A stretch of DNA of 64,000 nucleotides from Macrostomum lignano (lineage: Eukaryota): contig NIVC01002041.1 of NCBI GenBank assembly GCA_002269645.1, forward strand, positions 113,804 to 177,803, given 5' to 3'. Shown in pieces: positions 8,324 through 64,000 of the stretch. A program made the position numbers and the translations under genes. How positions within the stretch are numbered: the stretch's first letter is position 1; each line of letters starts with the position of its first letter. The notes below the pieces were generated by a model that was given only the letters and a program-made list of their open reading frames with translations, was not told the DNA's origin and did no database searches.

Positions 8324-8436
8324 GTGGGAGGGATATTTGCTCCTCTATTTGCAAAAGAGCTGCAGACACACAACATTAAGCCTCCAACTTGAGCTTCTCT
8401 TCCAGCCTCTAATCCAGCCTCTAATCCGACCTCTAA

Positions 8437-8890
8437 TCCAGCCTCTAACTTGAACATCGAATCCAGCCGCTAACTTGAACATCGAATCCAGCCGCTAACT
8501 TGAACATCGAATCCAGCCGCTAACTTGAACATCGAATCCAGCCGCTAACTTGAACATCGAATCCAGCCGCTAACTTGAACATCGAATCCAGCCGCTAACT
8601 TGAACATCGAATCCAGCCTCTAACTTGAACATCGAATCCAGCCGCTAACTTGAACATCGAATCCAGCCGCTAACTTGAACATCGAATCCAGCCGCTAACT
8701 TGAACATCGAATCCAGCCTCTAACTTGAACATCGAATCCAGCCGCTAACTTGAACATCGAATCCAGCCGCTAACTTGAACATCGAATCCAGCCGCTAACT
8801 TGAACATCGAATCCAGCCTCTAACTTGAACATCGAATCCAGCCTCTAACTTGAACATCGAATCCAGTCTCTAACTTGAACATCGAATCCA
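8437..8890. repeat. 25-bp minisatellite (GAATCCAGCCGCTAACTTGAACATC), about 17-18 copies
   Basis: A 25-bp period is directly visible, and it fades into degenerate CCAGCCTCTAA units up to about 9190. Confidence 0.93.
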
Positions 8891-10828: not shown

Positions 10829-10892
10829 AGACAGACAGACAGACGACAGACAGACAGACGACAGACAGACAGACGAACAGACAAGACAGACA

Positions 10893-10933
<41 letters not shown>

Positions 10934-10936
10934 CTA

Positions 10937-11016
<80 letters not shown>

Positions 11017-11040
11017 GACAGACAGACAGACGAACAGACA

Positions 11041-11118
<78 letters not shown>

Positions 11119-11165
11119 CTAAGACAGACAGACAGACAGACAGATAGACAGACAGACAGACACTA

Positions 11166-11213
<48 letters not shown>

Positions 11214-11231
11214 GAACAGACAAGACAGACA

Positions 11232-11284
<53 letters not shown>

Positions 11285-11347
11285 CTAAGACAGACAGACA
11301 GACAGACAGATAGACAGACAGACGACAGACAGACAGACGAACAGACA

Positions 11348-11432
<85 letters not shown>

Positions 11433-11523
11433 CTAAGACAGACAGACAGACAGACAGACAGATCAGACAGACAGACAGATCAGACAGACAGACAGACACT
11501 AAGACAGACAGACAGACAGACAA
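10829..11523. repeat. Interrupted (GACA)n microsatellite, about 690 bp
   Basis: Directly visible. It accounts for the RQTD and SVCL ORFs in the track. Confidence 0.97.
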
Positions 11524-11583: not shown

Positions 11584-14500
11584 TCAGGCCGGATCCTGCT
11601 TGGTGAGAATCTCCAGCACCAGAGGGCTGGCCTCGTACACGCCCGAAGCGAGCATAGCCTGAAACTCTTGGGCGGCCATAAGCGACAGCTGCCTGACCAG
11701 GGGCAGGCGCAACAGGAGGCCGGCTACGCGCGATGGCGCCTCCGGGAATCTGGCCGAGCTGCACTGGCGCAGGAACTCCAGCACCCGGTTCTGCTGCCGC
11801 GTCACCAGCTGGGGATCGCACAGGCCCTGCACGTCTGGGCGGGGTTGGGCAGGGGGATTAGTGAGGAGAGGATAGGAGCTTTTCTATTCCGATAAGCGCT
11901 CCCAAAGCTCAGTTCTGATAGACAGGAATAATTCACTCACTCACTTGCAGAGGATTAAGGCAAAGCATCCGAACGGATTACTAACGGATCAGATAAATGG
12001 ACATACGAGTACATAGACAAACTGAAACCGCATTCTGCTCCAGAAATTCTATATTAAGCAGTCTTGACGCGGTGGGAAGTAGCATCGCTTTGATAAATAA
12101 TGGCTGGGAGCAATATAGAGAGGATAAAAGCCATTTGCTAACGATAGAATCGCTTCGCTCACTGCACGCGCAGGAAAAGTACTTTGAGAAGGTTTTTAAA
12201 GAAAATACACTGCATATTAATCATAATGATGCGAACGGCTACAAATAGCTATTCAATGGAAATGATGGCAACAGTAATCGTAAGGATCAAATCTACAGAA
12301 TAAAAATGGCAAGAAAATTTTGCATCTCACGAAAGATGCAGCCTAAACTGTCACCACCTGCTGACAAGAAAAAGAAGTAAATAGAAAATTTAGAATGATT
12401 AAATCTCATTTTTGTGATTTTATTCATAATCTTTTATCATCATTAAGTTTAATTATTAATAAACTGTCTACAGAAGGTACTTCCCACTTCCCAAAAAATG
12501 TTTACCCAACGTACAAGAAAGGCCACTCAGTACATTACCGTCTGTAAGCTACTTTCAGTTCAGTAGTAGGTTAAACAAAAGCATATTAGTGTATTTTTAA
12601 AGTCAAGGCTCATTTATTGGCTCCAATCGCGCCTTTTCACACAAAACCTCTACCCCACCCCACCGCTCAATTTTTATTGCCTTCCCCCACTGTTTAAGCC
12701 TAAAGCGGCCATGTACATTTCAGTGGACTGGCTAATGTACATTATGGCTGAACCAATTAGCAAGCTGTTTGCGCCTGCAAGCTTGGGCTTCTAAATTTGA
12801 GCTGGCTTTATTGAGCTCTATAAAATAGCTTATGTATTCTTCTTTGCTACTGAACTGGAAGTATAAAGCTGTATTTTGAGCGTGCCACCCCACCAGAACA
12901 TGCTTTGGCTCTTAGAGAACAAATGCTACACTGCGCAAAAGAGCGTACTGCGTATTAACAATTCAGAATATAATACTTATAAAGTGGGGCAATATGTAAA
13001 AAATATTTACTCAATTGAGAAGCCAGGGAGAGAGAAACTTCCTTCCTTCCCACTAGAGTTCAAGAGAGCCAATTCAAAGCTCAAGCCGGGGCATTGCAAC
13101 ATGAGTAGCACACAAACTTTGTTGTCACGCTGACACAAAATTGCAAAAGCGCAAAGCGGGAGCCCAGTGTAACATGGCTTAGGCTGATTTATACTGGATT
13201 GCCCAATAAAAGCCCCACCTATTTTTTGGGTGTACAGCGGGCCCTGACTTATCGTAAGGTATGTTCACTCTGTGTCTTGGGGGCTGGCCCTCATAGGTGT
13301 TAATTGCACAGCATCCTCCCGGCCAATGACTCAGAAGACCTTTAGCTTAAACAGTAATCAATAGAAGAATAGTTGAAAACTCACTGTCACTGTAGAGCGT
13401 GAGCAGCTGCAGCAGGGCGCAGTCAACAATGTCCACATTGAAATACTGCATGCAGTGGACAATCTCCTGCACTAGATGGAATAAGCTGTCCGGATAGCCA
13501 GTATAGTAGCGAGTCTGGTGAATATCGAACTCCATGCCTTCGCTGAACATTACCTTCTTGGGCTGGGCCAGCTCCATTGTTCTGCAAGGGCCGGGCGGCG
13601 GCGGGAGGGGGTATTGCCGAGTGCGGCAACCCAGGGGGCTCACCTAGTTAGCGTATTATTCATACCGTAAACTCTCCCAGTACAAAATAATACTCTGGGT
13701 GAGTAGGGATCAAACAATATCAATATTTTGAAATAGGGATTTAAGTTTAAACTGTCCTGTAATAGACGAGAGAATGAACATAAATATTATTGAATTAGGA
13801 TCTTGCTGCAATTAGGATTTCGACTGCAGGATTAAAAACTCTGCATTGGGGCAATGGGAATTCAGTTAGAAGATTGGGGCGATGGGAAATCAGTTAGAGG
13901 ATTGGGGCAATGGGAATTCAGTTAGAGGATTGGGGCAATGGGAATTCAGTTAGAGGATTGGGACAATGGGAATTCAGTTAGAGGATTGGGACAATGGGAA
14001 TTCAGTTAGAGGATTGGGGCAATGGGAATTCAGTTAGAGGATTGGGGCGATGGGAATTCAGTTAGAGGATTGGGACAATGGGAATTCAGCTAGAGGATTG
14101 GGACAATGGGAATTCAGCTAGAGGATTGGGACAATGGGAATTCAGCTAGAGGATTGGGACAATGGGAATTCAGCTAGAGGATTGGGACAATGGGAATTCA
14201 GCTAGAGGATTGGGGCAATGGGAATTCAGCTAGAGGATTGGGACAATGGGAATTCAGTTAGAGGATTGGGACAATGGGAATTCAGTTAGAGGACTGGGAC
14301 AATGGGAATTCAGCTAGAGGATTGGGACAATGGGAATTCAGCTAGAGGATTGGGACAATGGGAATTCAGCTAGAGGATTGGGACAATGGGAATTCAGCTA
14401 GAGGATTGGGACAATGGGAATTCAGTTAGAGGATTGGGACAATGGGAATTCAGTTAGAGGATTGGGACAATGGGAATTCAGTTAGAGGATTGGGACAATG

Positions 14501-17500
14501 GGAATTCAGCTAGAGGATTGGGACAATGGGAATTCAGTTAGAGGATTGGGACAATGGGAATTCAGCTAGAGGATTGGGACAATGGGAATTCAGTTAGAGG
14601 ACTGGGACAATGGGAATTCAGCTAGAGGATTGGGACAATGGGAATTCAGCTAGAGGATTGGGACAATGGGAATTCAGCTAGAGGATTGGGACAATGGGAA
14701 TTCAGCTAGAGGATTGGGACAATGGGAATTCAGCTAGAGGATTGGGACAATGGGAATTCAGCTAGAGGATTGGGACAATGGGAATTCAGCTAGAGGATTG
14801 GGACAATGGGAATTCAGCTAGAGGATTGGGACAATGGGAATTCAGTTAGAGGACTGGGACAATGGGAATTCAGCTAGAGGATTGGGACAATGGGAATTCA
14901 GCTAGAGGATTGGGACAATGGGAATTCAGCTAGAGGATTGGGACAATGGGAATTCAGCTAGAGGATTGGGACAATGGGAATTCAGCTAGAGGATTGGGAC
15001 AATGGGAATTCAGCTAGAGGATTGGGACAATGGGAATTCAGCTAGAGGATTGGGACAATGGGAATTCAGCTAGAGGATTGGGACAATGGGAATTCAGATA
15101 AAAATAGGGGAATAGTAGGACAGTTGATTTTGGGAAAGGACCTTAGCAAACACCCAATTCTCGCAGATCAATAGAAAACACGCACCTGAACGCCAAGCGA
15201 ATCATCTGAATGTCCAGAAAGGCGCTCTGAATAAGCAGCTTCCTATCTGACATTGCCAATTCCGAGAAGTTGGGCACCTCTTTGCAGAAGCGAATGATGT
15301 TTTCAACCTCCAAATAGGCTGTGTTCATAAAGGCTTGACCGCAATTCAGTCTTGTGCAGCAAAAGTAGCCTGCATTGATTGAAAAGTGCATCGAGTTCGC
15401 TTCATCAATTGGATGCTTTTCCTTAATTCTCCCGATGAAAACCCAGACCAAGAATAGGAAAGAAGAGACTCTAGACGACTCTAAAACGACGAGATGTCAC
15501 GGTAAAAGTCGCCAAAAAGTTGTCAAAGCGTCGCCTAAGACCCAATTTAAGGCGTTTTTTCGTTTAGAACTCTGAAACGAATCTGGGGCCGTCTGGGACC
15601 TCCGGAGTCGATGTAGAATCACTGAGTTGTCTCTAAAGCGCATCTGCGTTACTTTATAAAGAATAATAATCGCATTTTGCATTAATAACACAACTCTATT
15701 GAGTCTGCTTGAGTTAGTAGAAAGTTAAGCGCTAACAGAAGGACTCTTTCGCGACCCCATACAATTCTACACCTCACGAGATGCATTCGTGACTTAACAG
15801 ACGCATAACAGTCGGTTTGAATTGTTAAAAAGTCACAAGAGCCTTTTAGCGATTCCTGTCACAGTAACGTTTTTCACTGAGTCCCTCCCCTCTCCTGTAA
15901 AGCAGCTAAAATAGCTGATCAGCAAAACATAGAGGATACAAGACTACGACTAGCGCCCATCTTTCACCTTGCCGCGTCGCCAAAAGAGGGGAAGGGGGAG
16001 CAGCCAAATCCCAATCCATTTTATCCCCGCCCTTCTCTTCCCTAGCAACACTGCTTGGGAGAGAGTTGGTGAGGCAAAACCTTGAGTATTCATGCAAAAA
16101 GGAGCTGAATAGCTAATCCGCAGCAAGAGACTTTCTGCTCTCCTTGCTTTAGTGCAAAGATGGCTTTTATTATGCTTCTTGTACTCAATTAATAACCTAA
16201 TAAAGTTCACCTTGTACTTAACACTCGTGAGTCAACGAGATAAACTTATTATTGAGCAAAAAAACTCAGGCCAAAAAATGTAGCAAATAAACGATTTATA
16301 AACAAACTTTAGGGTTTAATCTATATATTTGGCCCACCTGTGCTATCCAATTTGCCGATGGTGCAAGCAATTAAATTAGTGGAAACAGCTGCCGCCTCTT
16401 CTATCTGACTGGAATTTTAACAATTTCATCCTCTGCTGATTCATTGTCGACTGCCCTTCAGTTAATATAAGCTCAGGCCAATTCAATGGGATTTTGTAGG
16501 ATTTTATCAGTTCAATAATTTCCACTCAACCCAGGCCTTTAAAACGCGACAAAATAATAAAATGACAGATGCAGGCGAGTGAAATATTTCCACTGTTTAA
16601 AGGTGGGTAGCAGCCTCCATTTTTTTAACGATGGGCTGCATCTGCTGTCGATCCAAAGGTGGCTTTGAAATTGCAGGCTGCATCTACCGCTGATCTCGGT
16701 TGCATCTATAGCTGATCTCGGTTGCATCTATAGCTGATCTCGGTTGCATCTATAGCTGATCTCGGTTGCATCTATAGCTGATCTCGGTTGCATCTATAGC
16801 TGATCTCGGTTGCATCTATAGCTGATCTCGGTTGCATCAATAGCTGATCTAGGTTGCATCAATAGCTGATCTAGGTTGCATCTATAGCTGATCTAGGTTG
16901 CATCTATAGAGCTGATCTAGGTTGCATCTATAGCTGATCTCGGTTGCATCTATAGCTGATCTCGGTTGCATCTATAGCTGATCTCGGTTGCATCAATAGC
17001 TGATCTAGGTTGCATCAATAGCTGATCTAGGTTGCATTTATAGAGCTGATCTAAGTTGCATCTATAGAGCTGATCTAGGTTGCATCTAACGCGGTTGCAT
17101 CAATAGTTGATCTAGGTTGCATCTACCGCGGTTGCATCAATAGCTGATCTAGGTTGCACCTACCGCGGTTGCATCTATAGCTGATCTAGGTTGCATCAAT
17201 AGCTGATCTAGGTTGCACCTACCGCGGTTGCATCTATAGCTGATCTAGGTTGCACCTACCGATGATCTAGGTTGCACCTACCGATGATCTAGGTTGCATC
17301 TATAGCTGATCTACTAGGCTGCACCTACCGCTGTTTGCATCTTTAGCTACATAAATTTGGACTGCAGCTATCATCACAATACTGAAAAGCTACTCACCCT
17401 GCTCAGCAATTTTCGGTATCTTATTCGGTTCCAGCGCCAGCAGATCGCTGACAAACTTTTTGGCCTCCAGACTGCTAAGCATCTCTAAATAGGCGCCGCG

Positions 17501-20495
17501 ACCGACTCCATTAAAAGGCGAGCCGATGCGAGCGTCTGTAGTCCCGGCTTCGATCGGGGGATACAGCTCGTCCAGGTCGCAGCTGTGGTAGCTAGATTGC
17601 TGCTGCTGCTGCAACTCGTGCTGCTTCTGCTTTTGTTGCCCAAGCAACGGCTGCAGCGGCGGTATTATAGAGGGAAGATTTATTACGAGGGGTGTCCCAA
17701 AAGTCGGTGCACTTTCTTCACTACAGCCTTTTCTGACCGATCAGAAATATTTATTTTGTAGCAGTTAACAAGAGAATTATCTGCCCGTTAAAATTACTTT
17801 CTGTTTATTTCTGTATCTGCTGGCATTCTTGAGATATGAGCATTTTTATGCCCCACCCCCTGTGCTACTTTTACAAATTGCCATAGACCGAAGCTTTGTA
17901 CCTGATGTACGAAACAACGAAACATTCAACGAATCAATAAAACATCCGCAGCATGAAAGCTGAGGAAAGAACAGTTAAAAGTTAATCATTAACATTGTCC
18001 TGAGGCTTCTCCACATAGTCACCACTGCGCTGCACACTTGACACTTATGGCATCAGCAAGGGCATCAGCAATGGCATCGACAAATTCAGGAATTGCTTGA
18101 CACCGATGCCAGACTGACAGTTTGTGAGATTGATCAGACTGACATGCTCGGCAGTCCAAAGTTCACTGTTCCACACCGCACGGTGACTGCAGAGTTGGAA
18201 CTGTCAAAGATCTCGGCCCGCTGGGTACCGCGGCTCCACACCTTCTGCGCCATGACAACCCACAATCTACGTCCCACACGGCCAAGAAAACGGAGGAGAC
18301 GACCAAGCAGGCAAGTTTTGAGCTGCTCTGACACCCACGCCTTCTCTCTGGATTTGTCACCAGCTGACTTTTCCATCTTTCCAAAGATGAAGAAGCTGCT
18401 GCATGGACGAATTTTTGCTTGTTGTGGGAACCTGGAAGCATTGACTCGCCAAGTTCTCCTAGATAGATAGGCCAGTCTGAAGAGTCACAGCTCTACAGAC
18501 TTTCTAGCCGGGCATTGCTGACCACAGAATAGCCATCAGACTCGATGAAAACGGCATCTAGGCCAAGAGAAGCGTCCCAGAGTCACTTGCGTCAACCCCC
18601 AGAGTCGTTGCAGACGACACAGGTAAAATAGGAAACTCTTGAAACGACTTTAAAACGACGGGATTTCGCGGTACAAGTCGCCAAAAAGTTGTCAGAGTCG
18701 CAAAACAGTCACTTTCTTCAAGCGTTTCACTGTCTGCGACTCTCAAACGACTCTGGGCGCGACCCTTTGGGGTCGTATAGTCGAATTTGAGGCGTGCTAG
18801 AGATGCTGTAGAGTCACTGAGTCGTGTTTGAAGCGCACTTGCGTCGCTTGATGAATTCGAGTCGCAGCTCTTGCGAAAGTTAAGCGCCAACACAACAATT
18901 CTTGGACGACTCTTTCGCGAGTCTGTAACTCACGTGACGCTCTTGTGACCGCTTTTGGGTCGTTAAAAAGTTACAAGAGCCGCCCCACAGTCGCTAGATA
19001 CTTGCTTGCAATGACTTTTAAGACCTTAGAGATAGGTCTGTTTGCTGACAAGCTGGTTGACTTAGTCCGTATACTCGTACCAGTGTACACTACTGTATTC
19101 AAACACGCTCACGCAGGGTGTACAGCGGCGCTTGTGACTTTCTAATCGTCAGGCTTATACACTTTGTGTCTGGGGGGGGGGGGGGGTGAATTGCAAAACA
19201 CAGAGGGATCACAGAGCCAGCGATAGCCTATGGCCAGCCCTGCTGCAAACCATTTACATAACGGGATTTGCTTCAAGACTTTGGTACATTGTGTACTCAC
19301 ACCACTGCACGACTGCAGCGTATTTTTCGACGAAGGTATTAGCGAATGAAATCCGGCTACGCTAACAGAAAATGACGGCAACTGGCTGATGTCCAAATCC
19401 GGCGGCATCTGCTGCTGCTGATTGCCGCGGCCGCCAAGCTGATGGCGAGGAAGCTGGTGCTGCCGCCGGTGCTGCAACTGATGATTGCCGATTGGCGGCT
19501 TATGATGTGTCAGTTTGGGGAGTTGCATTTTGCCAGCGGGAACTGCGAGCGAAGAGTTGAACGGCTGAGGCGGCAGCGGGATGTTCATAGCTGACTGGCG
19601 CTGACGTTGCGAAGGCGGCGGAGCAGAGAAATGGCAGGCGCCGTCCGTTGGAGGCGTCTTTGGCCGCTTCCGGCGATTGCCGGGGGTGCGATCGGGCCGG
19701 ACCACTGGGTTAGGGATTGCGGGGGAGTGGCTTGGTTTCTGTGCGGATCTGTATCACACAATTGAAACACACCCAATCCAGTGCACCCGTTGGTTGAAAC
19801 ACACCCAATCCAGGGCACCCGTTGGTTGAAACACACCCCATTCAGTGCACCCGTTGGTTGAAACACCCCATTCAGTGCACCCGTTGGTTGAAACACCCCA
19901 TTCAGTGCACCCGTTGGTTGAAACACCCCATTCAGTGCACCCGTTGGTTGAAACACACCCAATCCAGTGCAACCGTTGGTTGAAACACACCCCATCCAGT
20001 GCACCCTTTGGTTGAAACACCCCATCCAGTGCACCCGTTGGTTGAAACACACCTCTTCCAGTGCACCCGTTGGTTGAAACACTCCCATCAGTGCAACCTC
20101 TGATTGACAAATCTAGTGTTAAACTAAATGAGTAGACTTAAAATTACAAAAATATCTGCTTACAGTCCCTGTCCATGCCGGCATTCAAGCACTTTGTCAG
20201 TCGACAATACTGACAGACATTTCTACTGGTCTTGTTGATCTCGCAGGTGCCCTCCCTCGCGCATTTGTAGTCACGTGGTGTCTGTATACTGCGCTTAAAG
20301 AATCCTTTGCAGCCTTCGCAGGCCTCAATGCCATAGTGAATGCCACTTGAACTACAGAGTCAAAAGATTTTAATTGTGTAAAAATATCTTCAGTAGCAGT
20401 CACTACTCGAAACAATTAAGTTAAAACTATTGATTGCTGGAGACTTACATGTCATTGCAAACTCGGCATAGTTCAATAGACTTTAATTTCTTCAT
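11584..20495 (-). CDS. Nuclear hormone receptor (C4 zinc-finger DBD plus LBD), 7 coding exons, 507 aa
   Basis: Exons are 20495-20449, 20351-20164, 19704-19301, 17650-17398, 15369-15186, 13581-13385 and 11834-11584. All introns are GT-AG with compatible phases, and the total is 1524 nt. DBD: [30 protein letters not shown]...[33 protein letters not shown]: [40 protein letters not shown] and AF-2-like PLVLEIL. Confidence 0.93.
13845..15100. repeat. 28-bp intronic minisatellite (GGATTGGGACAATGGGAATTCAGCTAGA), about 44 copies
   Basis: A 28-bp period is directly visible inside a nuclear receptor intron. Confidence 0.96.
15430..15860 (+). repeat. Diverged copy of a GACTC/GAGTC-rich dispersed repeat
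   Basis: Shares CGATGAAAAC, AAGTCGCCAAAAAGTTGTCA, AAAGTTAAGCGC and GTTAAAAAGT(C/T)ACAAGAGCC with 18543-19025. Confidence 0.7.
16686..17330. repeat. 22-bp intronic minisatellite (ATAGCTGATCTCGGTTGCATCT)
   Basis: A 22-bp period with variant units is directly visible. Confidence 0.94.
17684..18540 (+). mobile_element. Internally deleted, decayed mariner element
   Basis: TA followed by TIR-like CGAGGGGTGTCCCAAAAGT at 17684. The ORF 18093-18470 retains KISARWVPR and a degenerate YSPDL motif ([22 protein letters not shown]). No right TIR was found. Confidence 0.8.
18543..19025 (+). repeat. GACTC/GAGTC-rich dispersed repeat (about 480 bp, MITE-like)
   Basis: High-identity reverse-complement match to about 50975-51410, and a weaker match to 15430-15860. 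Confidence 0.8.
19760..20095. repeat. 30/32-bp intronic minisatellite (CAGTGCACCCGTTGGTTGAAACA(CA)CCCCATT)
   Basis: About 11 tandem units are directly visible. Confidence 0.92.
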
Positions 20496-21379
20496 AGAAC
20501 ACCTTCTTGTTCTTGGTCTTGAAAAAAAATTATGCTAGTATCAAGTAAAAAAGAGTACCAAGTGGATATTTAAGGGCAAGCAATGACCACTAAAAGCAAG
20601 GTAGTCATATTCCTAGAGCAAGTAGATATTTGCCATCATTGACTTATATAAGGTATCATATTTATACTATAGTGATAATGAAGCTAGAAGGTCAAGCTAT
20701 TGCCACTGAGGTTTAATCTTATTAATTAGATTCTAGGCTAAAGGTTTAAGTCATTTGTACATTTTGAATATAATTGCATCAAAAATTTATATTTTTCACT
20801 TGATCTTTAGCTTAGGCAATGACACAAATTTGCATAAAATTAATAATAACATAATCTTTTCATTGTTAAACCCCAAAAGACTAACGCGGAGTAAAAGCAA
20901 GTGGCACAAAAGACCGGCAGACGCGGCCCAGAAAGGGAAAACGAACCCCTTAAGCGACGAAATATATTGATCTTGTAATTTAAAAGAGAAAAAAAAATAT
21001 TTTGCCAAAATTACGCCGACTCAGCGGCCGCGACGCGTGACTAAATAGCACAGAGCGGGGGGAGGCTGCCCTAAGCCCTGCACGCACGCAGAGCACCAGC
21101 ACCCCACCAACCCACCAAAGCGAGGCCGGGCCGGCGCGGGGGGGGGGGTTTAAAACCAGTTAGAGTCAGATACCTGCCTCAAACTGACGTATTAAACCCC
21201 AAAAGACTAACGCAGAGTAAAAGCAAGTGGCACAAAAGACCGGCAGACGCGGCCCAGAAAGGGAAAACGAACCCCAACACCAACAGAAAGAGGGAGAAGG
21301 AGACAAGCGTGTAAAATCAAATCAACGAGCCGCAGAAAAAATTAAACCAAGCCAAAAAAGCCAGGTCCAAGCAATAGCT

Positions 21380-23737
21380 CTAAGACTCGTACCTGAGCTC
21401 GGGATCTGCTTCAGCCGTCGCAACTCGCTCCGCTCGAGAACTGCGCCAGAGACCGGGGCTCAGCGCGAGCGACGCCTGCTCAAGCAACCGGGCCGCCGTT
21501 GACTCATTGAGGCAGGCCCTGCGCAGATCTTCCGGCTGCGCCTTGGCCCGGCCGAAGTAGCGCAGCAGAAACAGCAGCATGTGGCGGGGATGCGTCAGGC
21601 AGCGCGACAGCGGGTCGCTCAGCAGCTGCCAGGACCCCGGCATATGGTGAGCTCGAAACTGAAAGTCGTGCCTCAGCGCTGCCAGAGTGGCCGTTTTGAG
21701 CAGGGTCATGACGATCGGGTTGCTGGAGGCACCGCGGTTGATGGTGCCGACCGCCGCGCTGCTGTCGACGTAGCAGGCCACCTTGCCGCCGGCCAGCTGC
21801 TCCTGGAACAGAATGATGGCGAGCAGCGGCAGTACCGTCTCCTTGGCGTTGATGTGCTCGCTCAGGAAGATGCCACCGGCGTCACTGCAGAAGTCGACGA
21901 GGCGGAACTCGCGCTGGCCATCAGAGGTGCTCAGGATCATGCCACCGGCACTGACGCAGGCGTCCGTCTCGACCGCTGCCAGCACTCGTGCACGCCGCCA
22001 CAGCTTGTCGGTCGGGAACACTGGGATTGCATGCTGCCAGAACTGCAACTGGGCCAGTAGCTCGCCGCGCACCGGTACTCGATGATGCTGATCAGGAATA
22101 GCGATGGTTATCTCCAGGAGCGCGCGAAGCAGGGCCTTTGCAGGTTTGGCCACTTTGCAGAACCAGTTCAGTTTGCCGACTAGGTGCTGAAGGCGACGTT
22201 TTTGCAGGCTCTTCGAGTTGGCGCAGTCCTGGAGAAGTTCTCGAAGGCCGTCCATCTTCTTGGCGGGCAGTGACAGCAGGCCAGTCAATGTGTCGATCTG
22301 CACACCCAGGAAAGTGACCGAAGTGGCTGGGCTCTGCGTCTTGGCCCAGTTGATCTCAAAGCCGAGGCGCTGCAGGGTGACCAGCAGAAAATTGTGCAGC
22401 TGCAGGCAGACCTCGTAGTCCCGGGCAGCTATGCAGAAATCGTCGAGGTATGCGATGACGACGAATTTGGACAGATGCGAGAATTGCCTGTACATAAAGC
22501 GCTTGACAGCTTGCGTTACGCGGTGGAAAATGTTGACTGATGCCGCCGCACCGAATGGGAGTCGCGTGTCAACCAGATAGGTGGGCTGACCGTCCAGCTC
22601 GAACGTCCACCGGAGCCCCGTCGCCTTATAGCAGTCTGGGTGCACCTGAACACTTCGGTAGGCGTGGCGTAGGTCGACCTTGCTGAGGAACCAGCCTGGT
22701 GCCAGCTGCCTGGTGAGATCCTCGACATTAACAAACTTCATCTTCTGGCGGGGCTTGTACAGATCGTTGAGGCTGTTGCCCTGTGGCGCGGACGCGTCGT
22801 GAATCAGGCGGATGGCGCCGTCTGCCTTCGGGACGGCGCCCAGTGGGCTGATGATGGTCGGCCTGGCGATGCCCAAGTCAGTTGCGCTGATGTACCGGCC
22901 AGCCACGACCTCCTCTCTGATCTGCAGCTCAACGGCATTCCGATTTGCCTCGCAGCGGGCGGATGCATGATTTTCGAGCTGGGATTCGCTGGTCGGAGCC
23001 GCGTCGGTGATGCGAAAGCCATCGCGAATTCCCGCGATCAGAAACTCCGCGTCCGAGTCTCCGAGCAGGACTGGTGTCCAAGCAGCAGTTAACAGCGGCC
23101 AACGTTTTCGGAGTGCAGCCACCGGGCCGGCAACAGGGCCGGCAGCAGCGCCGGCAGCAGGACCGGCAGCAGGGCCGGCAGCGGGGCCGGCGGCAGGGCC
23201 GGCGGCAGGGCCGGCGGCAGGGCCGGCGGCAGGGCCGGCGGCAGGGCCGGCGGCAGGGCCGGCGGCAGGGCCGGCGGCAGGGCCAGCGGCTGGGCCGGCA
23301 GCAGGACCGGCGGCAGGGCCGGCGGCTGGGCCGGCAGCAGGACCGGCGGCAGGGCCGGCGGCTGGGCCGGCAGCAGGGCCGGCGGCTGGGCCGGCGGCAG
23401 GGCCGGCAGCAGGGCCGGCAGCAGGACCGGCAGCAGGAACGGCAGCAGGGCCGGCAGCAGGGCCGGCGGCAGGGCCGGCGGCAGGGCGAGTGGCAGGGCG
23501 AGTGGCATGGCGAGCGGCAGTGCGAGCGGCAGGGCGAGCGGCAGGGCGAGCGGCAGGGCGAGTGGCAGGTCGAGCGGCAGGGCGAGCGGCAAGGCGAGTG
23601 GCAGGGCGAGCGGAAGGGCCAGTGGCAGTGCGAGCAGCTGTCTCGCATGGAATTAAAATTTTGGACTGTCTATCAGACGCCGTCCGCTTAGGGCTAAAAC
23701 TGGTGCCGCCGCGACCCGCCTCTTTGCTCAGTTTTTT
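21380..23737 (-). CDS. Pol (RT plus RNase H) of copy 1, in the -1 frame relative to gag
   Basis: RT motifs [26 protein letters not shown] and YLDD. RNase H motifs ETDAC, HINAKE, YVDS and HMPG...SDPLSR. The frame is open from the slippery site at 23731-23737 through the PAAG repeat into the track ORF 21380-23122. Confidence 0.88.
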   Translation of the reverse strand, partial: KKLSKEAGRGGTSFSPKRTASDRQSKILIPCETAARTATGPSARPATRLAARPAARPATRPAARPAARPAARTAARHATRPATRPAAGPAAGPAAGPAAVPAAGPAAGPAAGPAAGPAAGPAAGPAAGPAAGPAAGPAAGPAAGPAAGPAAGPAAGPAAGPAAGPAAGPAAGPAAGPAAGPAAGPAAGPAAGPAAGAAAGPVAGPVAALRKRWPLLTAAWTPVLLGDSDAEFLIAGIRDGFRITDAAPTSESQLENHASARCEANRNAVELQIREEVVAGRYISATDLGIARPTIISPLGAVPKADGAIRLIHDASAPQGNSLNDLYKPRQKMKFVNVEDLTRQLAPGWFLSKVDLRHAYRSVQVHPDCYKATGLRWTFELDGQPTYLVDTRLPFGAAASVNIFHRVTQAVKRFMYRQFSHLSKFVVIAYLDDFCIAARDYEVCLQLHNFLLVTLQRLGFEINWAKTQSPATSVTFLGVQIDTLTGLLSLPAKKMDGLRELLQDCANSKSLQKRRLQHLVGKLNWFCKVAKPAKALLRALLEITIAIPDQHHRVPVRGELLAQLQFWQHAIPVFPTDKLWRRARVLAAVETDACVSAGGMILSTSDGQREFRLVDFCSDAGGIFLSEHINAKETVLPLLAIILFQEQLAGGKVACYVDSSAAVGTINRGASSNPIVMTLLKTATLAALRHDFQFRAHHMPGSWQLLSDPLSRCLTHPRHMLLFLLRYFGRAKAQPEDLRRACLNESTAARLLEQASLALSPGLWRSSRAERVATAEADPELRYES
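23116..23640. repeat. 12-bp GC-rich coding tandem repeat (CCTGCCGCCGGC and variants), copy 1
   Basis: Directly visible. It reads PAAG, PCRR or LPPA in the three minus-strand frames. Confidence 0.93.
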
Positions 23738-24774
23738 GATTCGGCAGCCACCGAGCTGTGTTGCAGCTTTGAGTGGCTCCCTTCGCAGATGCGGCAGATG
23801 TGGGCGAAATTGCAGGTGTGTCTGTGACAGCCTTTGTTGCTATTGAACAAGCCGCAGATGACCTGTCCAGCGGATGACAGCTGGCCCCTGCTACGGTGAC
23901 CCTGGACTCCTTGACCGACCGCGACTGGGCCAGCAGCTCGCAGGTTTTTGGGCGCCGTCATATGCTTGATGATGAGGTTCAGATCGGGGCTGTCCCAGTC
24001 GCGCTGTCGCGAGTGCTGCTGCAGCCTCATGTCCTGGTCGTACTGGAGCACCACCTTCCAGTCGTAGCCAGCGTCGATCAGCTCGCCGATGTGGATGTTA
24101 AAGTTGAGGTAGGCGTTCAGACTCTTGCAGTCGGGCTGTCCATCCGTACCGGGCGCCACCAGCTGGCCGGTCTCCAGCAGTCGCTGCATGATCCGCGCGT
24201 TGGCAGCCACCCACTGGCCGAAGTTGACTCCGGACAGGCTCGGCGTTGCGCCTTTCAGAGTCAGGCGACCACGTTCCTGTGTCAGCCATCCTCCCGACTG
24301 CTGCTTCTCGTCCAGAAATTCCGGGATGAGCAGCGCTGATGGGGGCCGCTGGGCTCCGGCCGAATCAAACCTCGGTTGTCGGCTCTGGTCCCCGAACAGG
24401 CTGGCGTAGATGTCCGGCCCTCCTCTGGCCAGCGGGGGCGATGCGGCGCCACTGCGGATCGACTGCACTTCATCCCGCAACTGGGCCTCAGCCTTCTGCA
24501 GTTTAAGCAGCTCGATCCTCTTCTGAGTCTGCCGAATCTGCACTTCTGTGGCCTCCTCCGCTGGCGCAGCCCGGCGCACGTCATCCTCGTCCTGGTCGTC
24601 GTCACCGTCGTCATCGCTGGGAGCTCGTTCGGCCTGGCTTGCAGCGAGCAGGCGGCCTATCAGCTCTTCTTTATTGCCACTTGTAGGTAAGGCCTTCTCG
24701 AGTAAGGCATCTTTGAGAGCCTGCACGGTCATGCTGCCCAACGTAGAGTCCATTGTGAGTGCAGTGCTTGGCAA
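23728..24774 (-). CDS. Gag-like ORF1 of copy 1 (N-terminal SAP domain, C-terminal CCCH/CCHH zinc knuckles)
   Basis: SAP-like MTVQALKDALLEKALPTSGNKEELIGRLL and zinc-knuckle CGLFNSNKGCHRHTCNFAHICRICEGSH. The first ATG is at 24753. Confidence 0.85.
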   Translation of the reverse strand: MPSTALTMDSTLGSMTVQALKDALLEKALPTSGNKEELIGRLLAASQAERAPSDDDGDDDQDEDDVRRAAPAEEATEVQIRQTQKRIELLKLQKAEAQLRDEVQSIRSGAASPPLARGGPDIYASLFGDQSRQPRFDSAGAQRPPSALLIPEFLDEKQQSGGWLTQERGRLTLKGATPSLSGVNFGQWVAANARIMQRLLETGQLVAPGTDGQPDCKSLNAYLNFNIHIGELIDAGYDWKVVLQYDQDMRLQQHSRQRDWDSPDLNLIIKHMTAPKNLRAAGPVAVGQGVQGHRSRGQLSSAGQVICGLFNSNKGCHRHTCNFAHICRICEGSHSKLQHSSVAAESKN

Positions 24775-25493
24775 ATTAGGCAGGCTAAAAATATTTTGCC
24801 AAAATTACGCCGACTCAGCGGCCGCGACGCGTGACTAAATAGCACAGAGCGGGGGGAGGCTGCCCTAAGCCCTGCACGCACGCAGAGCACCAGCACCCCA
24901 CCAACCCACCAAAGCGAGGCCGGGCCGGCGCGGGGGGGGGGTTTAAAACCAGTTAGAGTCAGATACCTGCCTCAAACTGACGTATTAAACCCCAAAAGAC
25001 TAACGCAGAGTAAAAGCAAGTGGCACAAAAGACCGGCAGACGCGGCCCAGAAAGGGAAAACGAACCCCTTAAGCGACGAAATATATTGATTTTGTAATTT
25101 AAAAGAAAAAAATATTTTGCCAAAATTACGCCGACTCAGCGGCCGCGACGCGTGACTAAATAGCACAGAGCGGGGGGAGGCTGCCCTAAGCCCTGCACGC
25201 ACGCAGAGCACCAGCACCCCACCAACCCACCAAAGCGAGGCCGGGCCGGCGCGGGGGGGGGGTTTAAAACCAGTTAGAGTCAGATACCTGCCTCAAACTG
25301 ACGTATTAAACCCCAAAAGACTAACGCAGAGTAAAAGCAAGTGGCACAAAAGACCGGCAGACGCGGCCCAGAAAGGGAAAACGAACCCCAACACCAACAG
25401 AAAGAGGGAGAAGGAGACAAGCGTGTAAAATCAAATCAACGAGCCGCAGAAAAAATTAAACCAAGCCAAAAAAGCCAGGTCCAAGCAATAGCT

Positions 25494-27905
25494 CTAAGAC
25501 TCGTACCTGAGCTCGGGATCTGCTTCAGCCGTCGCAACTCGCTCCGCTCGAGAACTGCGCCAGAGACCGGGGCTCAGCGCGAGCGACGCCTGCTCAAGCA
25601 ACCGGGCCGCCGTTGACTCATTGAGGCAGGCCCTGCGCAGATCTTCCGGCTGCGCCTTGGCCCGGCCGAAGTAGCGCAGCAGAAACAGCAGCATGTGGCG
25701 GGGATGCGTCAGGCAGCGCGACAGCGGGTCGCTCAGCAGCTGCCAGGACCCCGGCATATGGTGAGCTCGAAACTGAAAGTCGTGCCTCAGCGCTGCCAGA
25801 GTGGCCGTTTTGAGCAGGGTCATGACGATCGGGTTGCTGGAGGCACCGCGGTTGATGGTGCCGACCGCCGCGCTGCTGTCGACGTAGCAGGCCACCTTGC
25901 CGCCGGCCAGCTGCTCCTGGAACAGAATGATGGCGAGCAGCGGCAGTACCGTCTCCTTGGCGTTGATGTGCTCGCTCAGGAAGATGCCACCGGCGTCACT
26001 GCAGAAGTCGACGAGGCGGAACTCGCGCTGGCCATCAGAGGTGCTCAGGATCATGCCACCGGCACTGACGCAGGCGTCCGTCTCGACCGCTGCCAGCACT
26101 CGTGCACGCCGCCACAGCTTGTCGGTCGGGAACACTGGGATTGCATGCTGCCAGAACTGCAACTGGGCCAGTAGCTCGCCGCGCACCGGTACTCGATGAT
26201 GCTGATCAGGAATAGCGATGGTTATCTCCAGGAGCGCGCGAAGCAGGGCCTTTGCAGGTTTGGCCACTTTGCAGAACCAGTTCAGTTTGCCGACTAGGTG
26301 CTGAAGGCGACGTTTTTGCAGGCTCTTCGAGTTGGCGCAGTCCTGGAGAAGTTCTCGAAGGCCGTCCATCTTCTTGGCGGGCAGTGACAGCAGGCCAGTC
26401 AATGTGTCGATCTGCACACCCAGGAAAGTGACCGAAGTGGCTGGGCTCTGCGTCTTGGCCCAGTTGATCTCAAAGCCGAGGCGCTGCAGGGTGACCAGCA
26501 GAAAATTGTGCAGCTGCAGGCAGACCTCGTAGTCCCGGGCAGCTATGCAGAAATCGTCGAGGTATGCGATGACGACGAATTTGGACAGATGCGAGAATTG
26601 CCTGTACATAAAGCGCTTGACAGCTTGCGTTAGGCGGTGGAAAATGTTGACTGATGCCGCCGCACCGAATGGGAGTCGCGTGTCAACCAGATAAGTGGGC
26701 TGACCGTCCAGCTCGAACGTCCACCGGAGCCCCGTCGCCTTATAGCAGTCTGGGTGCACCTGAACACTTCGGTAGGCGTGGCGTAGGTCGACCTTGCTGA
26801 TGAACCAGCTTGGTGCCAGCTGCCTGGTGAGATCCTCGACATTGGCAAACTTCATCTTCTGGCGGGGCTTGTACAGATCGTTGAGGCTGTTGCCCTGTGG
26901 CGCGGACGCGTCGTGAATCAGGCGGATGGCGCCGTCTGCCTTCGGGACGGCGCCCAGTGGGCTGATGATGGTCGGCCTGGCGATGCCCAAGTCAGTTGCG
27001 CTGATGTACCGGCCAGCCACGACCTCCTCTCTGATCTGCAGCTCAACGGCATTCCGATTTGCCTCGCAGCGGGCGGATGCATGATTTTCGAGCTGGGATT
27101 CGCTGGTCGGAGCCGCGTCGGTGATGCGAAAGCCATCGCGAATTCCCGCGATCAGAAACTCCGCGTCCGAGTCTCCGAGCAGGACTGGTGTCCAAGCAGC
27201 AGTTAACAGCGGCCAACGTTTTCGGAGTGCAGCCACCGGGCCGGCAACAGGGCCGGCAGCAGGACCGGCAGCAGGGCCGGCGGCAGGGCCGGCGGCAGGG
27301 CCAGCGGCTGGGCCGGCAGCAGGACCGGCGGCAGGGCCGGCGGCGGGCCGGCAGCAGGACCGGCGGCAGGGCCGGCGGCTGGGCCGGCAGCAGGGCCGGC
27401 AGCAGGACCGGCAGCAGGGCCGGCAGCAGGACCGGCAGCAGGGCCGGCAGCAGGGCCGGCAGCAGGGCCGGCAGCAGGGCCGGCAGCAGGACCGGCAGCA
27501 GGGCCGGCAGCAGGACCGGCGGCAGGGCCGGCAGCAGGGCCGGCAGCAGGACCGGCAGCAGGAACGGCAGCAGGACCGGCGGCAGGGCCGGCAGCAGGAC
27601 CGGCAGCAGGGCCGGCAGCAGGACCGGCGGCAGGGCCGGCAGCAGGGCCGGCAGCAGGACCGGCAGCAGGAACGGCAGCAGGGCCGGCAGCAGGGCCGGC
27701 AGCAGGAACGGCAGCAGGGCCGGCAGTAGGGCCGGCAGCAGGGCCGGCGGCAGGGCCGGCGGCAGGGCGAGTGGCAGGGCGAGTGGCATGGCGAGCGGCA
27801 GGGCGAGCGGCAGGGCGAGCGGCAGGGCGAGTGGCAGGTCGAGCGGCAAGGCGAGTGGCAGGGCGAGCGGCAGGGCCAGTGGCAGTGCGAGCAGCTGTCT
27901 CGCAT
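25494..27905 (-). CDS. Pol (RT plus RNase H) of copy 2
   Basis: Same RT and RNase H motifs as copy 1. A 1-bp deletion in the repeat at about 27345 places RT in frame with the upstream MRDS ATG. Confidence 0.88.
27232..27897. repeat. 12-bp GC-rich coding tandem repeat, copy 2
   Basis: Directly visible. The gag-to-RT spacing is 143 bp longer than in copy 1 (12 units minus 1 bp). Confidence 0.93.
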
Positions 27906-27984
27906 GGAATTAAAATTTTGGACTGTCTATCAGACGCCGTCCGCTTAGGGCTAAAACTGGTGCCGCCGCGACCCGCCTCTTTGC

Positions 27985-29031
27985 TCAGTTTTTTGATTCG
28001 GCAGCCACCGAGCTGTGTTGCAGCTTTGAGTGGCTCCCTTCGCAGATGCGGCAGATGTGGGCGAAATTGCAGGTGTGTCTGTGACAGCCTTTGTTGCTAT
28101 TGAACAAGCCGCAGATGACCTGTCCAGCGGATGACAGCTGGCCCCTGCTACGGTGACCCTGGACTCCTTGACCGACCGCGACTGGGCCAGCAGCTCGCAG
28201 GTTTTTGGGCGCCGTCATATGCTTGATGATGAGGTTCAGATCGGGGCTGTCCCAGTCGCGCTGTCGCGAGTGCTGCTGCAGCCTCATGTCCTGGTCGTAC
28301 TGGAGCACCACCTTCCAGTCGTAGCCAGCGTCGAGCAGCTCGCCGATGTGGATGTTAAAGTTGAGGTAGGCGTTCAGACTCTTGCAGTCGGGCTGTCCAT
28401 CCGTACCGGGCGCCACCAGCTGGCCGGTCTCCAGCAGTCGCTGCATGATCCGCGCGTTGGCAGCCACCCACTGGCCGAAGTTGACTCCGGACAGGCTCGG
28501 CGTTGCGCCTTTCAGAGTCAGGCGACCACGTTCCTGTGTCAGCCATCCTCCCGACTGCTGCCTCTCGTCCAGAAATTCCGGGATGAGCAGCGCTGATGGG
28601 GGCCGCTGGGCTCCGGCCGAATCAAACCTCGGTTGTCGGCTCTGGTCCCCGAACAGGCTGGCGTAGATGTCCGGCCCTCCTCTGGCCAGCGGGGGCGATG
28701 CGGCGCCACTGCGGATCGACTGCACTTCATCCCGCAACTGGGCCTCAGCCTTCTGCAGTTTAAGCAGCTCGATCCTCTTCTGAGTCTGCCGAATCTGCGC
28801 TTCTGTGGCCTCCTCCGCTGGCGCAGCCCGGCGCACGTCATCCTCGTCCTGGTCGTCGTCACCGTCGTCATCGCTGGGAGCTCGTTCGGCCTGGCTTGCA
28901 GCGAGCAGGCGGCCTATCAGCTCTTCTTTATTGCCACTTGTAGGTAAGGCCTTCTCGCGTAAGGCATCTTTGAGGGCCTGCACGGTCATGCTGCCCAACG
29001 TAGAGTCCATTGTGAGTGCAGTGCTTGGCAA
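27985..29031 (-). CDS. Gag-like ORF1 of copy 2 (SAP domain plus zinc knuckles)
   Basis: 348-aa ORF almost identical to 23728-24774. Confidence 0.85.
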   Translation of the reverse strand: MPSTALTMDSTLGSMTVQALKDALREKALPTSGNKEELIGRLLAASQAERAPSDDDGDDDQDEDDVRRAAPAEEATEAQIRQTQKRIELLKLQKAEAQLRDEVQSIRSGAASPPLARGGPDIYASLFGDQSRQPRFDSAGAQRPPSALLIPEFLDERQQSGGWLTQERGRLTLKGATPSLSGVNFGQWVAANARIMQRLLETGQLVAPGTDGQPDCKSLNAYLNFNIHIGELLDAGYDWKVVLQYDQDMRLQQHSRQRDWDSPDLNLIIKHMTAPKNLRAAGPVAVGQGVQGHRSRGQLSSAGQVICGLFNSNKGCHRHTCNFAHICRICEGSHSKLQHSSVAAESKN

Positions 29032-29281
29032 ATTAGGCAGGCTAAAAATATTTTGCCAAAATTACGCCGACTCAGCGGCCGCAACGCGTGACTAAATAGC
29101 ACAGAGCGGGGGGGAGGCTGCCCTAAGCCCTGCACGCACGCAGAGCACCAGCACCCCACCAACCCACCAAAAAGAGGCCGGGCCGGCGCGGGGGGGTTTA
29201 AAACCAGTTAGAGTCAGATACCTGCCTCAAACTGACGTAAAAAATTTCAAATATGAATAATTATATATATATTAATGCATA

Positions 29282-30137
29282 GGGTCATTCCACAAGAGGG
29301 TCTATCATGTTTTTGAAATTTAAGCACTTGTAACTTTTAAAACATATAGATAGAACAAATCTGCAAAAAGCAATATATGTGAAACTTTTGGTTCTATATT
29401 TATTTATTACTTTGATTTATGGAAGTGCTTATCCCTACAGTCCCATACAGATAATTTTAATTTTATTCACACAGATCCATGTTGATAATTTTCAGCTTAT
29501 CCCCACAGCAGATTGGGATAGAGAATCTTAAAATGAATCTGTTAAAATCTGTCTATTTGTTTTCACTGTTTTACAAATCTTCTATTTCAAATAAACTATT
29601 GAATACTAAATAGTATTGAGTAACTTTATTAAAACTTTTTCACCAATCTATGTAGATAAAATTGGAATTATTGACACAACTTAAAGACTTGAATGGTGCA
29701 GTGGCAGCTATTATAATAAGCTACCATGGGGATAAGCTGGAAATTATCGACACAGATCGATGTGGATAAAATCGGAATTATTGACATGGCCTATAGACTT
29801 AAATGGTGGTAGCTATTTCAATAAGCTGCTATGGGGATAAGCTGGAAATTATTGACATGGATCTATATGAATAATTGGAATTATTGGTATAGGACCATGG
29901 GGATAAGCACTTCCTTTATTTATTACTACTTGGTTTTTTATTACCAAACAACTGTTAGCATAGTTTATGCTCTGCTATATGTTTAGTTGTTTTAGAATTC
30001 ACAAGCAGCTATATGAAAAATATAAAACTAAAAGTTTGACACATTGCTTTTTGCAGATTTGTTCTATTTATTATGGTTCAAAAGTTACAAGTGCTTAAAG
30101 TTCAAAATCATGACGGGACCCTCTTGTGGAATGACCC
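29282..30137. mobile_element. Non-autonomous TIR element (MITE) with internal tandem repeats
   Basis: Perfect 21-bp TIR GGGTCATTCCACAAGAGGGTC, extending imperfectly to about 100 bp. ATA lies on both flanks. Internal GGGGATAAGCTGGAAATTAT units recur. Confidence 0.85.
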
Positions 30138-30829
30138 ATATGCCAGTTGCAGGCTTTTATTTTTTCTTTTGCATTGAATATGCCAAGTGTACTAATGAAA
30201 AAAGCCTATTTATGCTAGAAAATTTGGTGAAATCTACTACCTTTTTGACTATAGTATATAGGGGCAAGCTGGTAAGGCAAGGGCAAATAGAGCTAGGTCA
30301 AAAACAAGATAAGATAGAGAGTAGCATTGGTTAATTAGCACAATAGAACTAAGCCACACTGCCTATTTTTGCCAATATTACAATATAAATCTAGATAAAA
30401 ATGACTAAATGACTAAATTAGACCTTGGAATAGACATTAGGACTATTTCAAAGCATTGGGCCATTGGGGCAGATTTTAAGTTTGAGTTTTGGGGAACTAT
30501 GGCATCAAGGCAATTTTTATCTTAAATATTTTTTGGAACATATGCGCCATGATCCTGACTATAGTATAAGGCATAAGAAACATAGATGTATAATAATATA
30601 TAATTGTTATTCTATTACTATATTATTAAGGGCATTCTTTTGTTTCACAATCACCTAGCACTATCCCTATGGGAATTGGGACTTTTGTTATATGATCTCC
30701 CCACAGAGGACAGAAAATTAGGCCTACTCTTAAAATTGAACTTCAAAATGGGACCACTTCTAAGTATATCATTTTAACATAAAATCTTGTGTCTTATAGA
30801 ATTTAGAAGCCTATCTTTATATTCACTTT

Positions 30830-46294: not shown

Positions 46295-46741
46295 ATATTT
46301 GTAGCTAAACAAGAATAGACAGATCTATTGACAGTGTGTTAGAAATATTCTGTTTAACTTTCCCTTTAGCAAATATCCTAAAGCTAAGCATAACTATTAA
46401 GTCTGTATAACTCAACGGAAATCGTATAACCCACTAGAAGCTTATAACATCGTTCGGATAACTATATAAACAGTTAGCTAGCTAGTTAACAGCCCTAGCC
46501 AATAAATAGCTTTGAACACGCTGAAATGTGTGTTAATAATTGCGTCTCTGACTTACTTTCTGCTATTAACTTTTTATCGTGCTTTGTATCAGGATTCTTT
46601 AGATTTTACCCCACTAAATTACACCTTGGTAGATAATCGAACAGGCTTTGTTGCGCAGTGCTGAGAACTAAGCGTCGATCAAATCACCAATGAGATGGTG
46701 GTTAGCTGAAGGACCAGGAGATAGCTGGACTCACTGAAAGA

Positions 46742-58741: not shown

Positions 58742-64000
<5,259 letters not shown>

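Follow-up and report, generated by a model that had tools for sequence, protein, structure and literature searches.

A head-to-tail pair of Ngaro-like retrotransposon copies in Macrostomum lignano that has probably lost its tyrosine recombinase by deletion

A 64,000-nt stretch of the Macrostomum lignano genome (assembly GCA_002269645.1, contig NIVC01002041.1, positions 113,804 to 177,803 of the forward strand; hereafter "the window") contains, at 20866-29239, a retrotransposon locus with gag and reverse transcriptase/RNase H (RT/RH) genes but no tyrosine recombinase (YR). The locus probably consists of two head-to-tail copies of a non-autonomous derivative of a Ngaro-like retrotransposon (DIRS order), one that has lost its YR by deletion and depends on a YR in trans, a reading to which we assign a probability of roughly 0.7. 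To our knowledge, YR retrotransposons are the least understood order of retroelements, and DIRS-1 is the only one to have been mobilised experimentally. Ngaro-like retrotransposons were defined by Goodwin and Poulter in 2004 (summarised in PMC8547959, PMC6681497 and PMC7192593), and they carry a YR in place of a DDE integrase (PMC8547959).

Two complete units joined head to tail

Evidence for the layout of the locus came from a comparison of the window with itself. A first-pass annotation, made from the letters alone, had described 20866-29239 as one element with split direct repeats in the order A1-open reading frames (ORFs)-B1-A2-B2. The split repeats were recovered, but the single element was not: the region consists of two complete tandem elements, a unit of 4255 nt and a unit of 4119 nt, which lie head to tail on the minus strand and meet at 24984/24985. 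In the sense orientation, from 29239 to 20866, the array runs A1-gag-microsatellite-pol-B1-A2-spacer-B2 twice over, with an AT-rich A2-B2 spacer of 39-43 nt. Repeat A (196-199 nt) and repeat B (84 nt) are each present four times (Table 1), and the copies of each are 96-100% identical. The array is GC-rich (60-66% G+C) amid AT-rich DNA, and all of its long ORFs are on the minus strand.

The repeats are most alike around the joint and least alike at the outer 5' end. The block that spans the joint (24787-25068) is 100% identical over 282 nt to the internal B1-A2 block of copy 2 (25108-25389) and 99.6% identical to the corresponding block of copy 1, and of all the repeat copies the outermost A1 (29044-29239) has diverged furthest, with about 96% identity (3.5-4% off the other A copies). 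The spacer of copy 1 matches only that of copy 2, from which it differs by a 4-nt indel and one substitution, and it has no counterpart beside A1 or B1. Outside a microsatellite with a 12-nt unit, the two units are about 99.5% identical, with 16 substitutions and a few homopolymer indels between them; they are also unlike in the lengths of the spacer, poly-G and poly-A tracts. Across 21149-22518, the 3' 1370 nt of the pol copies, there are no differences at all.

Both outer ends were read from the sequence and fall where the first-pass annotation had placed them. With a slash marking the junction, the left end reads CATTG/TTAAACCCC (in a longer reading, ...TTTTCATTG/TTAAACCCC...) and the right end reads GACGTA/AAAAAT (in a longer reading, ...CTGACGTA/AAAAATTTC...). 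The flanks (...TTTTCATTG on the left, AAAAATTTCAAA... on the right) share no repeat, confirming that there is no target-site duplication. No paralogous empty site was found across the window.

Probable loss of the tyrosine recombinase

The short distance between the pol stops and B1, and the absence of a YR, had both been proposed from the letters alone, and both were upheld. The stops, at 21380 and 25494, lie 104 nt from B1. When the window was searched by tblastn with YRs from two relatives, no match was better than E = 0.1. A profile was built from 19 YRs of the element's own RT lineage, all of which carry R, K, HxxR, W and Y as invariant residues, and was run without any filters on all stop-to-stop segments of the six-frame translation; the best E in the window was 0.3, and no inspected match lay in the element. 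A divergent YR hidden within the element, which the first-pass annotation had allowed for, was therefore detected by neither search.

The fate of the gene can be judged by comparison with the closest relatives outside Macrostomum, two metagenomic loci (L003 and L086, 54-58% pol identity) in which a YR follows RT/RH. The window pol is collinear with the pol frame of L003 without a gap, and with that of L086 with one 1-residue gap, as far as the start of the YR, where similarity stops, 19 codons before the window pol stop. In L003 and L086 the break point is the start of the conserved YR N-terminal domain, which lies in an overlapping frame. Because collinearity with YR-bearing relatives continues to the YR start and then breaks, the simplest reading is that the YR was lost by an internal deletion of about 300 codons, rather than replaced or hidden. 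This deletion would have its 5' breakpoint at about 21430-21440 in copy 1, equivalent to about 25545-25555 in copy 2. What follows, the last 19 codons and the 104 nt before B1, has no detectable counterpart in the relatives, save for a weak match to the metagenomic relative L085: 21307-21256 resembles sequence just past the L085 YR stop, with a score reached in 0 of 300 shuffles, in a stretch that is CT-rich and of low complexity. When the 3' region was compared with L003, L085 and L086 by BLAST at the DNA level, only the RNase H coding part aligned.

Two candidate remnants of the YR were considered and set aside. The pol tail "GLWRSS..." was rejected as the C-terminal GDWxS...Y motif of a YR, as the tail aligns collinearly and without gaps to the pol frames of L003 and L086. 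A stretch near the pol end was at first matched to the N-terminal motif of the YR P0060 (E = 1e-6), a match that was probably produced by the shared end of RNase H. The pol frame is the one in which L086 and L003 read the homologous nucleotides, and in both the P0060 motif comes 13 codons later. With this match dropped, the claim is restricted to similarity stopping at the YR start.

Additional evidence on the age of the deletion came from a third copy. The YR-less tail is common to both tandem copies and to the M. lignano protein UniRef100_A0A1I8JA32, which is 99% identical to the window pol and differs from both window copies at two to three residues. The gene model of A0A1I8JA32 splices at the GT of ...CTCAG/GTACGA into 78 residues that are encoded nowhere in the window, so the protein comes from another locus carrying the same deletion, and the deletion therefore predates the copying. 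The possibility that the locus is a one-off deletion derivative, which the first-pass annotation had raised as a challenge to its own reading, does not fit this shared tail. An exact-protein look-up of P0001 for other M. lignano copies returned no record.

Relatives with and without a recombinase

A YR lies directly downstream of RT/RH in four inspected relatives, L001, L002, L003 and L086. L002, from the coral Oculina patagonica, is a complete element, with A1, a 494-aa gag, a 524-aa RT/RH, a 352-aa intact YR whose stop overlaps B1, and then B1, A2 and B2. L001 is more distant (38% pol identity), and its YR is frameshifted. The YRs of the relatives carry the R..K..HxxR..W..Y residues, and those of L003 and L086 read HSLRRGGAT...GGWSSDA..RY.

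The closest YR-bearing relatives (L003, L084, L085 and L086; 39-58% identity) all derive from one Joint Genome Institute (JGI) metagenome sample (3300040801). They are GC-rich, occur as several variants, some of them frameshifted, and combine a gag bearing a SAP domain with RT/RH and YR; their source may be another flatworm.

To place these cases in a wider setting, a metagenome scan with the pol alignment gave 80 more loci, and all 83 were scored with pol and YR profiles. Six had too little sequence after pol to judge. A YR starting 0-120 nt after RT/RH was present in 67 of the 77 evaluable loci (52 full-length, 15 running off the contig end), at the position where the window element has none. 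In the remaining ten the YR was absent or deleted: L013 and L026 have only a C-terminal remnant left, L004 retains short pieces of both the N- and the C-terminus, the YR of L009 is deleted internally, L048 retains the N-terminal part only, and L015, L034, L045, L056 and L070 have no YR at all. Breakpoints differ among the six loci that were read in all frames after pol (L004, L005, L013, L026, L028 and L056). On a pol tree of the survey relatives, which contains no named reference Ngaro, DIRS, PAT or VIPER sequences, the ten YR-less loci are dispersed, some of them beside YR-bearing sisters (L013 is next to L028, at 73% identity). Three of the YR-less contigs (L013, L056 and L034) begin and end with identical sequence, which points to gag-plus-pol-only units of 3.1-3.3 kb, and in L015 another gag follows 550 nt after pol. 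All of the survey loci are short metagenome contigs, which may include chimeras or reflect the effects of split repeats on the assembly graph; L070 continues into another element. Judged from these sequences, YR loss with gag and RT/RH retained is clearly recurrent and polyphyletic among the relatives.

These results bear on the proposal of the first-pass annotation that the element belongs to a semi-autonomous lineage without a YR. That part of the proposal stands in which the YR-less structure is not unique to the locus, being shared by the tandem copies and A0A1I8JA32. A lineage that has been YR-free since ancient times is not supported, given the large majority of relatives with a YR at this position. 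Of the two routes of integration that the annotation suggested, an integrase borrowed in trans is a reasonable proposal, and integration without YR is not directly supported.

Gag, pol and a coding microsatellite

Gag is intact in both copies, as had been claimed. In each it has a SAP domain at its N-terminus (Pfam E = 8.5e-7 and 2.4e-9) and a C-x8-C-x4-C-x3-H knuckle at its C-terminus, and its homologues include the ORFs that precede RT in 10 related elements (BLASTP E = 1e-65 to 4e-8). A SAP domain (DNA/RNA-binding) also opens the gag of the closest metagenomic relative, L084 (278-1222); none was detected in the gag of L002, the one more distant relative whose gag was scanned against Pfam. 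A protein search with the window gag returned one match only, from a metagenome, and no Macrostomum protein.

The first-pass annotation was also right that RT/RNase H, with its YLDD motif, is intact. Pol matches RVT_1 (Pfam E = 2e-17), and an alignment of 26 sequences shows that the invariant RT residues and the D-E-D-D of RNase H are kept. Its identity to 58 RT/RH proteins is 33-54%.

Between gag and RT lies the microsatellite, (GGGCCGGCRGCA)n, which is GC-rich and 0.5-0.65 kb long. It can be translated in several frames, as (PAAG)n, the product of the pol frame, (CRSP)n and (LPAL)n, and it is absent from the relatives inspected, in which gag and pol abut or overlap. Two indels, one of 119 nt and one of 24 nt, make the microsatellite of copy 2 longer than that of copy 1 by 143 nt. 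Upstream of RT in copy 1, the pol reading frame remains open across the microsatellite as far as 23839, and pol overlaps the end of gag, in the -1 frame. Copy 2 has pol in the +1 frame with respect to gag; the two genes do not overlap there, and pol has an ATG of its own at 27905. This difference in frame between the copies is due to the 119-nt difference in microsatellite length.

Table 1. Features of the tandem array, in window coordinates
Feature	Position	Strand	Description
B2 of copy 1	20866-20949	-	84 nt, 3' terminus of the array; 98.8% identical to B1 at 21192-21275
A2/B2 spacer of copy 1	20950-20992	-	43 nt, AT-rich
A2 of copy 1	20993-21191	-	199 nt; 99.6% identical to 24787-24984 within a 283-nt A+B block
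B1 of copy 1	21192-21275	-	84 nt, from the self-comparison
Region probably left after YR deletion, copy 1	21276-21440	-	Last 19 pol codons (stop 21380-21382) and 104 nt untranslated to B1
pol of copy 1	21380-23122	-	RT (YLDD at 22439-22450) and RNase H
Microsatellite of copy 1	23124-23628	-	12-nt unit, 42 units, between gag and RT (Tandem Repeats Finder, TRF)
gag of copy 1	23728-24774	-	First ATG 24753; 341 aa; SAP domain, Pfam E = 8.5e-7
A1 of copy 1	24787-24984	-	Abuts B2 of copy 2; the copies join head to tail at this B2/A1 boundary, 24984/24985
3' repeat block of copy 2	24985-25389	-	B2 24985-25068, spacer 25069-25107, A2 25108-25305, B1 25306-25389
pol of copy 2	25494-27905	-	803-aa ATG-initiated ORF: microsatellite-encoded N-terminus, RT/RH, same shortened tail as copy 1
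Microsatellite of copy 2	27238-27892	-	12-nt unit, about 44-52 units (TRF)
gag of copy 2	27985-29031	-	SAP domain; 4 amino-acid differences from copy 1
A1 of copy 2	29044-29239	-	Forms the 5' end of the array; 96.0-96.5% identity to the remaining A copies

Mobilisation, origin of the dimer and alternative explanations

For a YR-deleted derivative that relies on a partner, element RNA would still be made, packaged and reverse-transcribed with the element's own gag and RT/RH proteins, and for insertion at new sites an autonomous relative would have to provide the YR in trans. Precise ends at the B/A junction, without target duplication, fit a YR supplied in this way, and the repeated loss of YR among the relatives suggests that the enzyme readily acts in trans. 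A precedent is found in Dictyostelium, where DIRS-1 proteins acted in trans on exogenous cDNA, and the cDNA was not incorporated when DIRS-1 proteins were missing (PMC7192593). In the model proposed for elements with the A1...B1A2B2 structure, full-length cDNA is restored when the repeats anneal to one another, such that A1 and A2, and B1 and B2, are identical at insertion (PMC6681497). Each unit of the array retains the split direct repeats on which replication in this model relies. The dimer most likely goes back to a circular copy that recombined with one already resident, at homologous positions and either through YR at a B/A junction or by homologous recombination. As an alternative route, a dimeric intermediate may have integrated. 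Unequal crossing-over between A1 and A2 or between B1 and B2 was rejected as the origin, since reasoning from the repeat map shows that its products lack the B1-A2-spacer-B2-A1 order.

Several observations weigh against this account. Of about 11 coding substitutions between the copies, 8 are non-synonymous, with no sign of purifying selection since the duplication, and of the two arrangements of the gag and pol frames probably no more than one is functional. The 3' breakpoint of the deletion is not located by DNA-level or local alignment. A0A1I8JA32 could be a paralogue from a large-scale duplication rather than a product of transposition, though its downstream sequence differs. As to mobilisation in trans, three copies carry the same deletion, one of them at another locus, and no YR-encoding partner was found: there is none in the window, and none of the 91 relatives of the closest YR protein carries the name Macrostomum. 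The protein collection barely covers M. lignano transposon proteins and has no other Macrostomum pol, gag or YR of this family, so its silence on an autonomous partner means little.

Some of these same observations would be expected if the locus were a dead relic, that is, a single old YR-deleted insertion, later duplicated locally and by genome duplication, immobile and never mobilised in trans; possibly the insertion occurred while the element was autonomous, and the YR was deleted afterwards. Only three copies are known, two of them adjacent in the window and one a UniRef protein, and M. lignano has undergone a recent whole-genome duplication. The predominance of non-synonymous substitutions, the divergence of the outer A1 and the microsatellite indel that leaves pol in different frames in the two copies also favour a relic. 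We nevertheless consider a relic unlikely: simple unequal crossing-over between internal repeats cannot make the exact B2/A1 joint, all of the ORFs are still open in copies that are so nearly identical outside the microsatellite, and the A0A1I8JA32 model enters sequence that the window does not contain. YR-deleted units have moreover been assembled repeatedly from the data of other organisms, suggesting amplification. A tandem dimer is precisely the product expected if a circle undergoes homologous recombination with a resident copy. This raises the question of whether the lineage is independent of YR altogether, with circular or linear cDNA, for instance, being integrated into resident copies by the host's homologous recombination and yielding head-to-tail arrays. 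The lack of a detected YR partner is consistent with such independence, as are the recurrence of gag-plus-pol-only units and the pol-then-gag order of L015, but pol-to-gag adjacency in short-read contigs can be an artefact of the split-repeat graph. The outer ends fall exactly at the B/A junction in unrelated AT-rich DNA without target duplication, such that the first insertion needs a site-specific event as opposed to homologous recombination. The requirement of DIRS-1 cDNA for DIRS-1 proteins in Dictyostelium (PMC7192593) also argues against YR independence, and polyphyletic YR loss, with YR-bearing sisters such as L028 beside L013, fits better with parasitism on autonomous relatives. Independence from YR is accordingly given very little weight.

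Least credible of all is that the tandem is an assembly artefact, in which one real copy was doubled by mis-assembly of paralogous or allelic reads. While repeat-rich genomes are prone to such errors, and the units differ mainly in a hypervariable microsatellite, 16 distinct substitutions separate the units elsewhere, the lengths of the spacer, poly-G and poly-A tracts differ, and the B2/A1 joint is clean and unique within a perfect 282-nt repeat. A broader proposal holds that units with only gag and RT/RNase H represent a recurrent and successful semi-autonomous lifestyle of Ngaro elements, in which the YR alone among the functions is freely trans-acting or can be replaced by homologous recombination of circular cDNA, and YR-less lineages arise, amplify and build arrays. 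We regard this generalisation as speculative and rather improbable.

Relationship to known elements

By structure the element is Ngaro-like, but it lacks the YR that defines the group, and it is perhaps best called a YR-deleted, non-autonomous Ngaro derivative. Like Ngaro elements, it has split direct repeats in the order A1-[ORFs]-B1A2B2, a layout also found in the coral element L002; it has gag followed by RT/RNase H and no target-site duplication, and the relatives of its pol have a YR directly after RNase H. Unlike Ngaro elements, it has a deleted YR gene, a 39-43 nt spacer between A2 and B2, a gag SAP domain shared only with its closest metagenomic relative L084, a coding microsatellite of 0.5-0.65 kb with a 12-nt unit between gag and RT, and a locus organised as a head-to-tail dimer.

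Features of other retroelement groups were also looked for. A methyltransferase domain is present in DIRS-like and PAT-like elements (PMC7192593); none was found in the window or the relatives, where RNase H runs straight into the YR start and there is no other Pfam match. DIRS-like elements in the strict sense have inverted terminal repeats together with an internal complementary region; no inverted pair was reported in the element, and the four pairs that were found all lie in the right flank beyond 29305. Features of long terminal repeat (LTR) retrotransposons (Gypsy, Copia and BEL) are likewise missing, with no flanking LTRs, no target duplication (4-6 bp in that group) and no rve or protease Pfam match.

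There are parallels with LTR retrotransposon derivatives of the BARE2 or Dasheng type, which lack one gene and are mobilised by a partner, the shared logic being internal deletion, retention of cis signals and use of a partner's protein. These derivatives belong to a different order and use a DDE integrase with target duplication, as opposed to YR and no duplication. Closer parallels exist among YR retrotransposons. Ngaro type 2b elements of Cafeteria burkhardae are also internally deleted, keep their terminal repeats, occur at several sites, still spread and rely on functions of full-length relatives; in these elements the 5' ORF1 is missing and the YR is kept, whereas the window element keeps gag and RT/RH and has lost the YR (PMC8547959). 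SIRE of Trypanosoma cruzi, which derives from VIPER, is likewise a non-autonomous YR-retrotransposon derivative built from repeat ends, but it has zero coding capacity, while the window element keeps two of three genes (PMC6681497). In fungi, truncated and incomplete YR elements make up the majority of copies (PMC3783388). Literature searches for Ngaro or DIRS together with Macrostomum, and for tandem or head-to-tail YR retrotransposons, found nothing relevant. New here are the family itself, characterised by a gag with a SAP domain and by a microsatellite that is coding, the cleanly joined tandem dimer, and the recurrence of YR-only loss across the lineage.

The findings leave the current picture of how YR retrotransposons work unchanged. 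Repeated loss of the recombinase with gag and RT/RH open does provide natural evidence on which functions act in cis and which in trans, and the exact head-to-tail B2/A1 joint may be viewed as a fossil of a circular or junction-containing intermediate. There is also a consequence for annotation, as searches for DIRS or Ngaro elements that are based on YR will miss copies of this kind, and classifiers based on RT may misfile them.

Surroundings of the array

The window represents host chromosomal DNA, given the presence of a forkhead gene at 58742-59896 on the minus strand. This intron-less 384-aa ORF contains a forkhead domain (Pfam E = 1e-35) and is probably a host transcription-factor gene. 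Three other long ORFs have no significant Pfam match: 5789-7966 (minus strand, 725 aa), 49399-50403 (plus strand, 334 aa) and 1301-2368 (plus strand, 355 aa), the last with a weak QRICH1 match only.

Repeats lie close to the array on both sides. A satellite at 19762-20095, 770 bp to its left, has a 30-32 nt unit and about 10.7 copies of TTGAAACACCCCATCCAGTGCACCCGTTGG. Starting 37 bp from its right end is a pair of 125-bp inverted repeats (29277-29401 and 30018-30143, 87.5% identical) that enclose about 620 bp of internally repetitive AT-rich DNA, resembling a miniature inverted-repeat transposable element (MITE) or a foldback element.

The window as a whole is unusually rich in minisatellites, which occur at 8435-8897, 10829-11522, 13845-15097, 16675-17313, 43780-44568, 46730-48423, 48905-49338 and 56526-57383. 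Examples include a 25-nt unit repeated 18 times, (AGAC)172, a 28-nt unit repeated 45 times, a 22-nt unit repeated 30 times, a 22/44-nt unit repeated 22 times, a 23-nt unit repeated 72 times, and 61-nt arrays. The arrays at 43937-44568 and 46730-48423 have units that are reverse-complementary to one another (GAGAGCCGCTATCCCCTTCAGT versus CTCACTGATAGGGAATAGCGGCT) and form an inverted pair about 2 kb apart.

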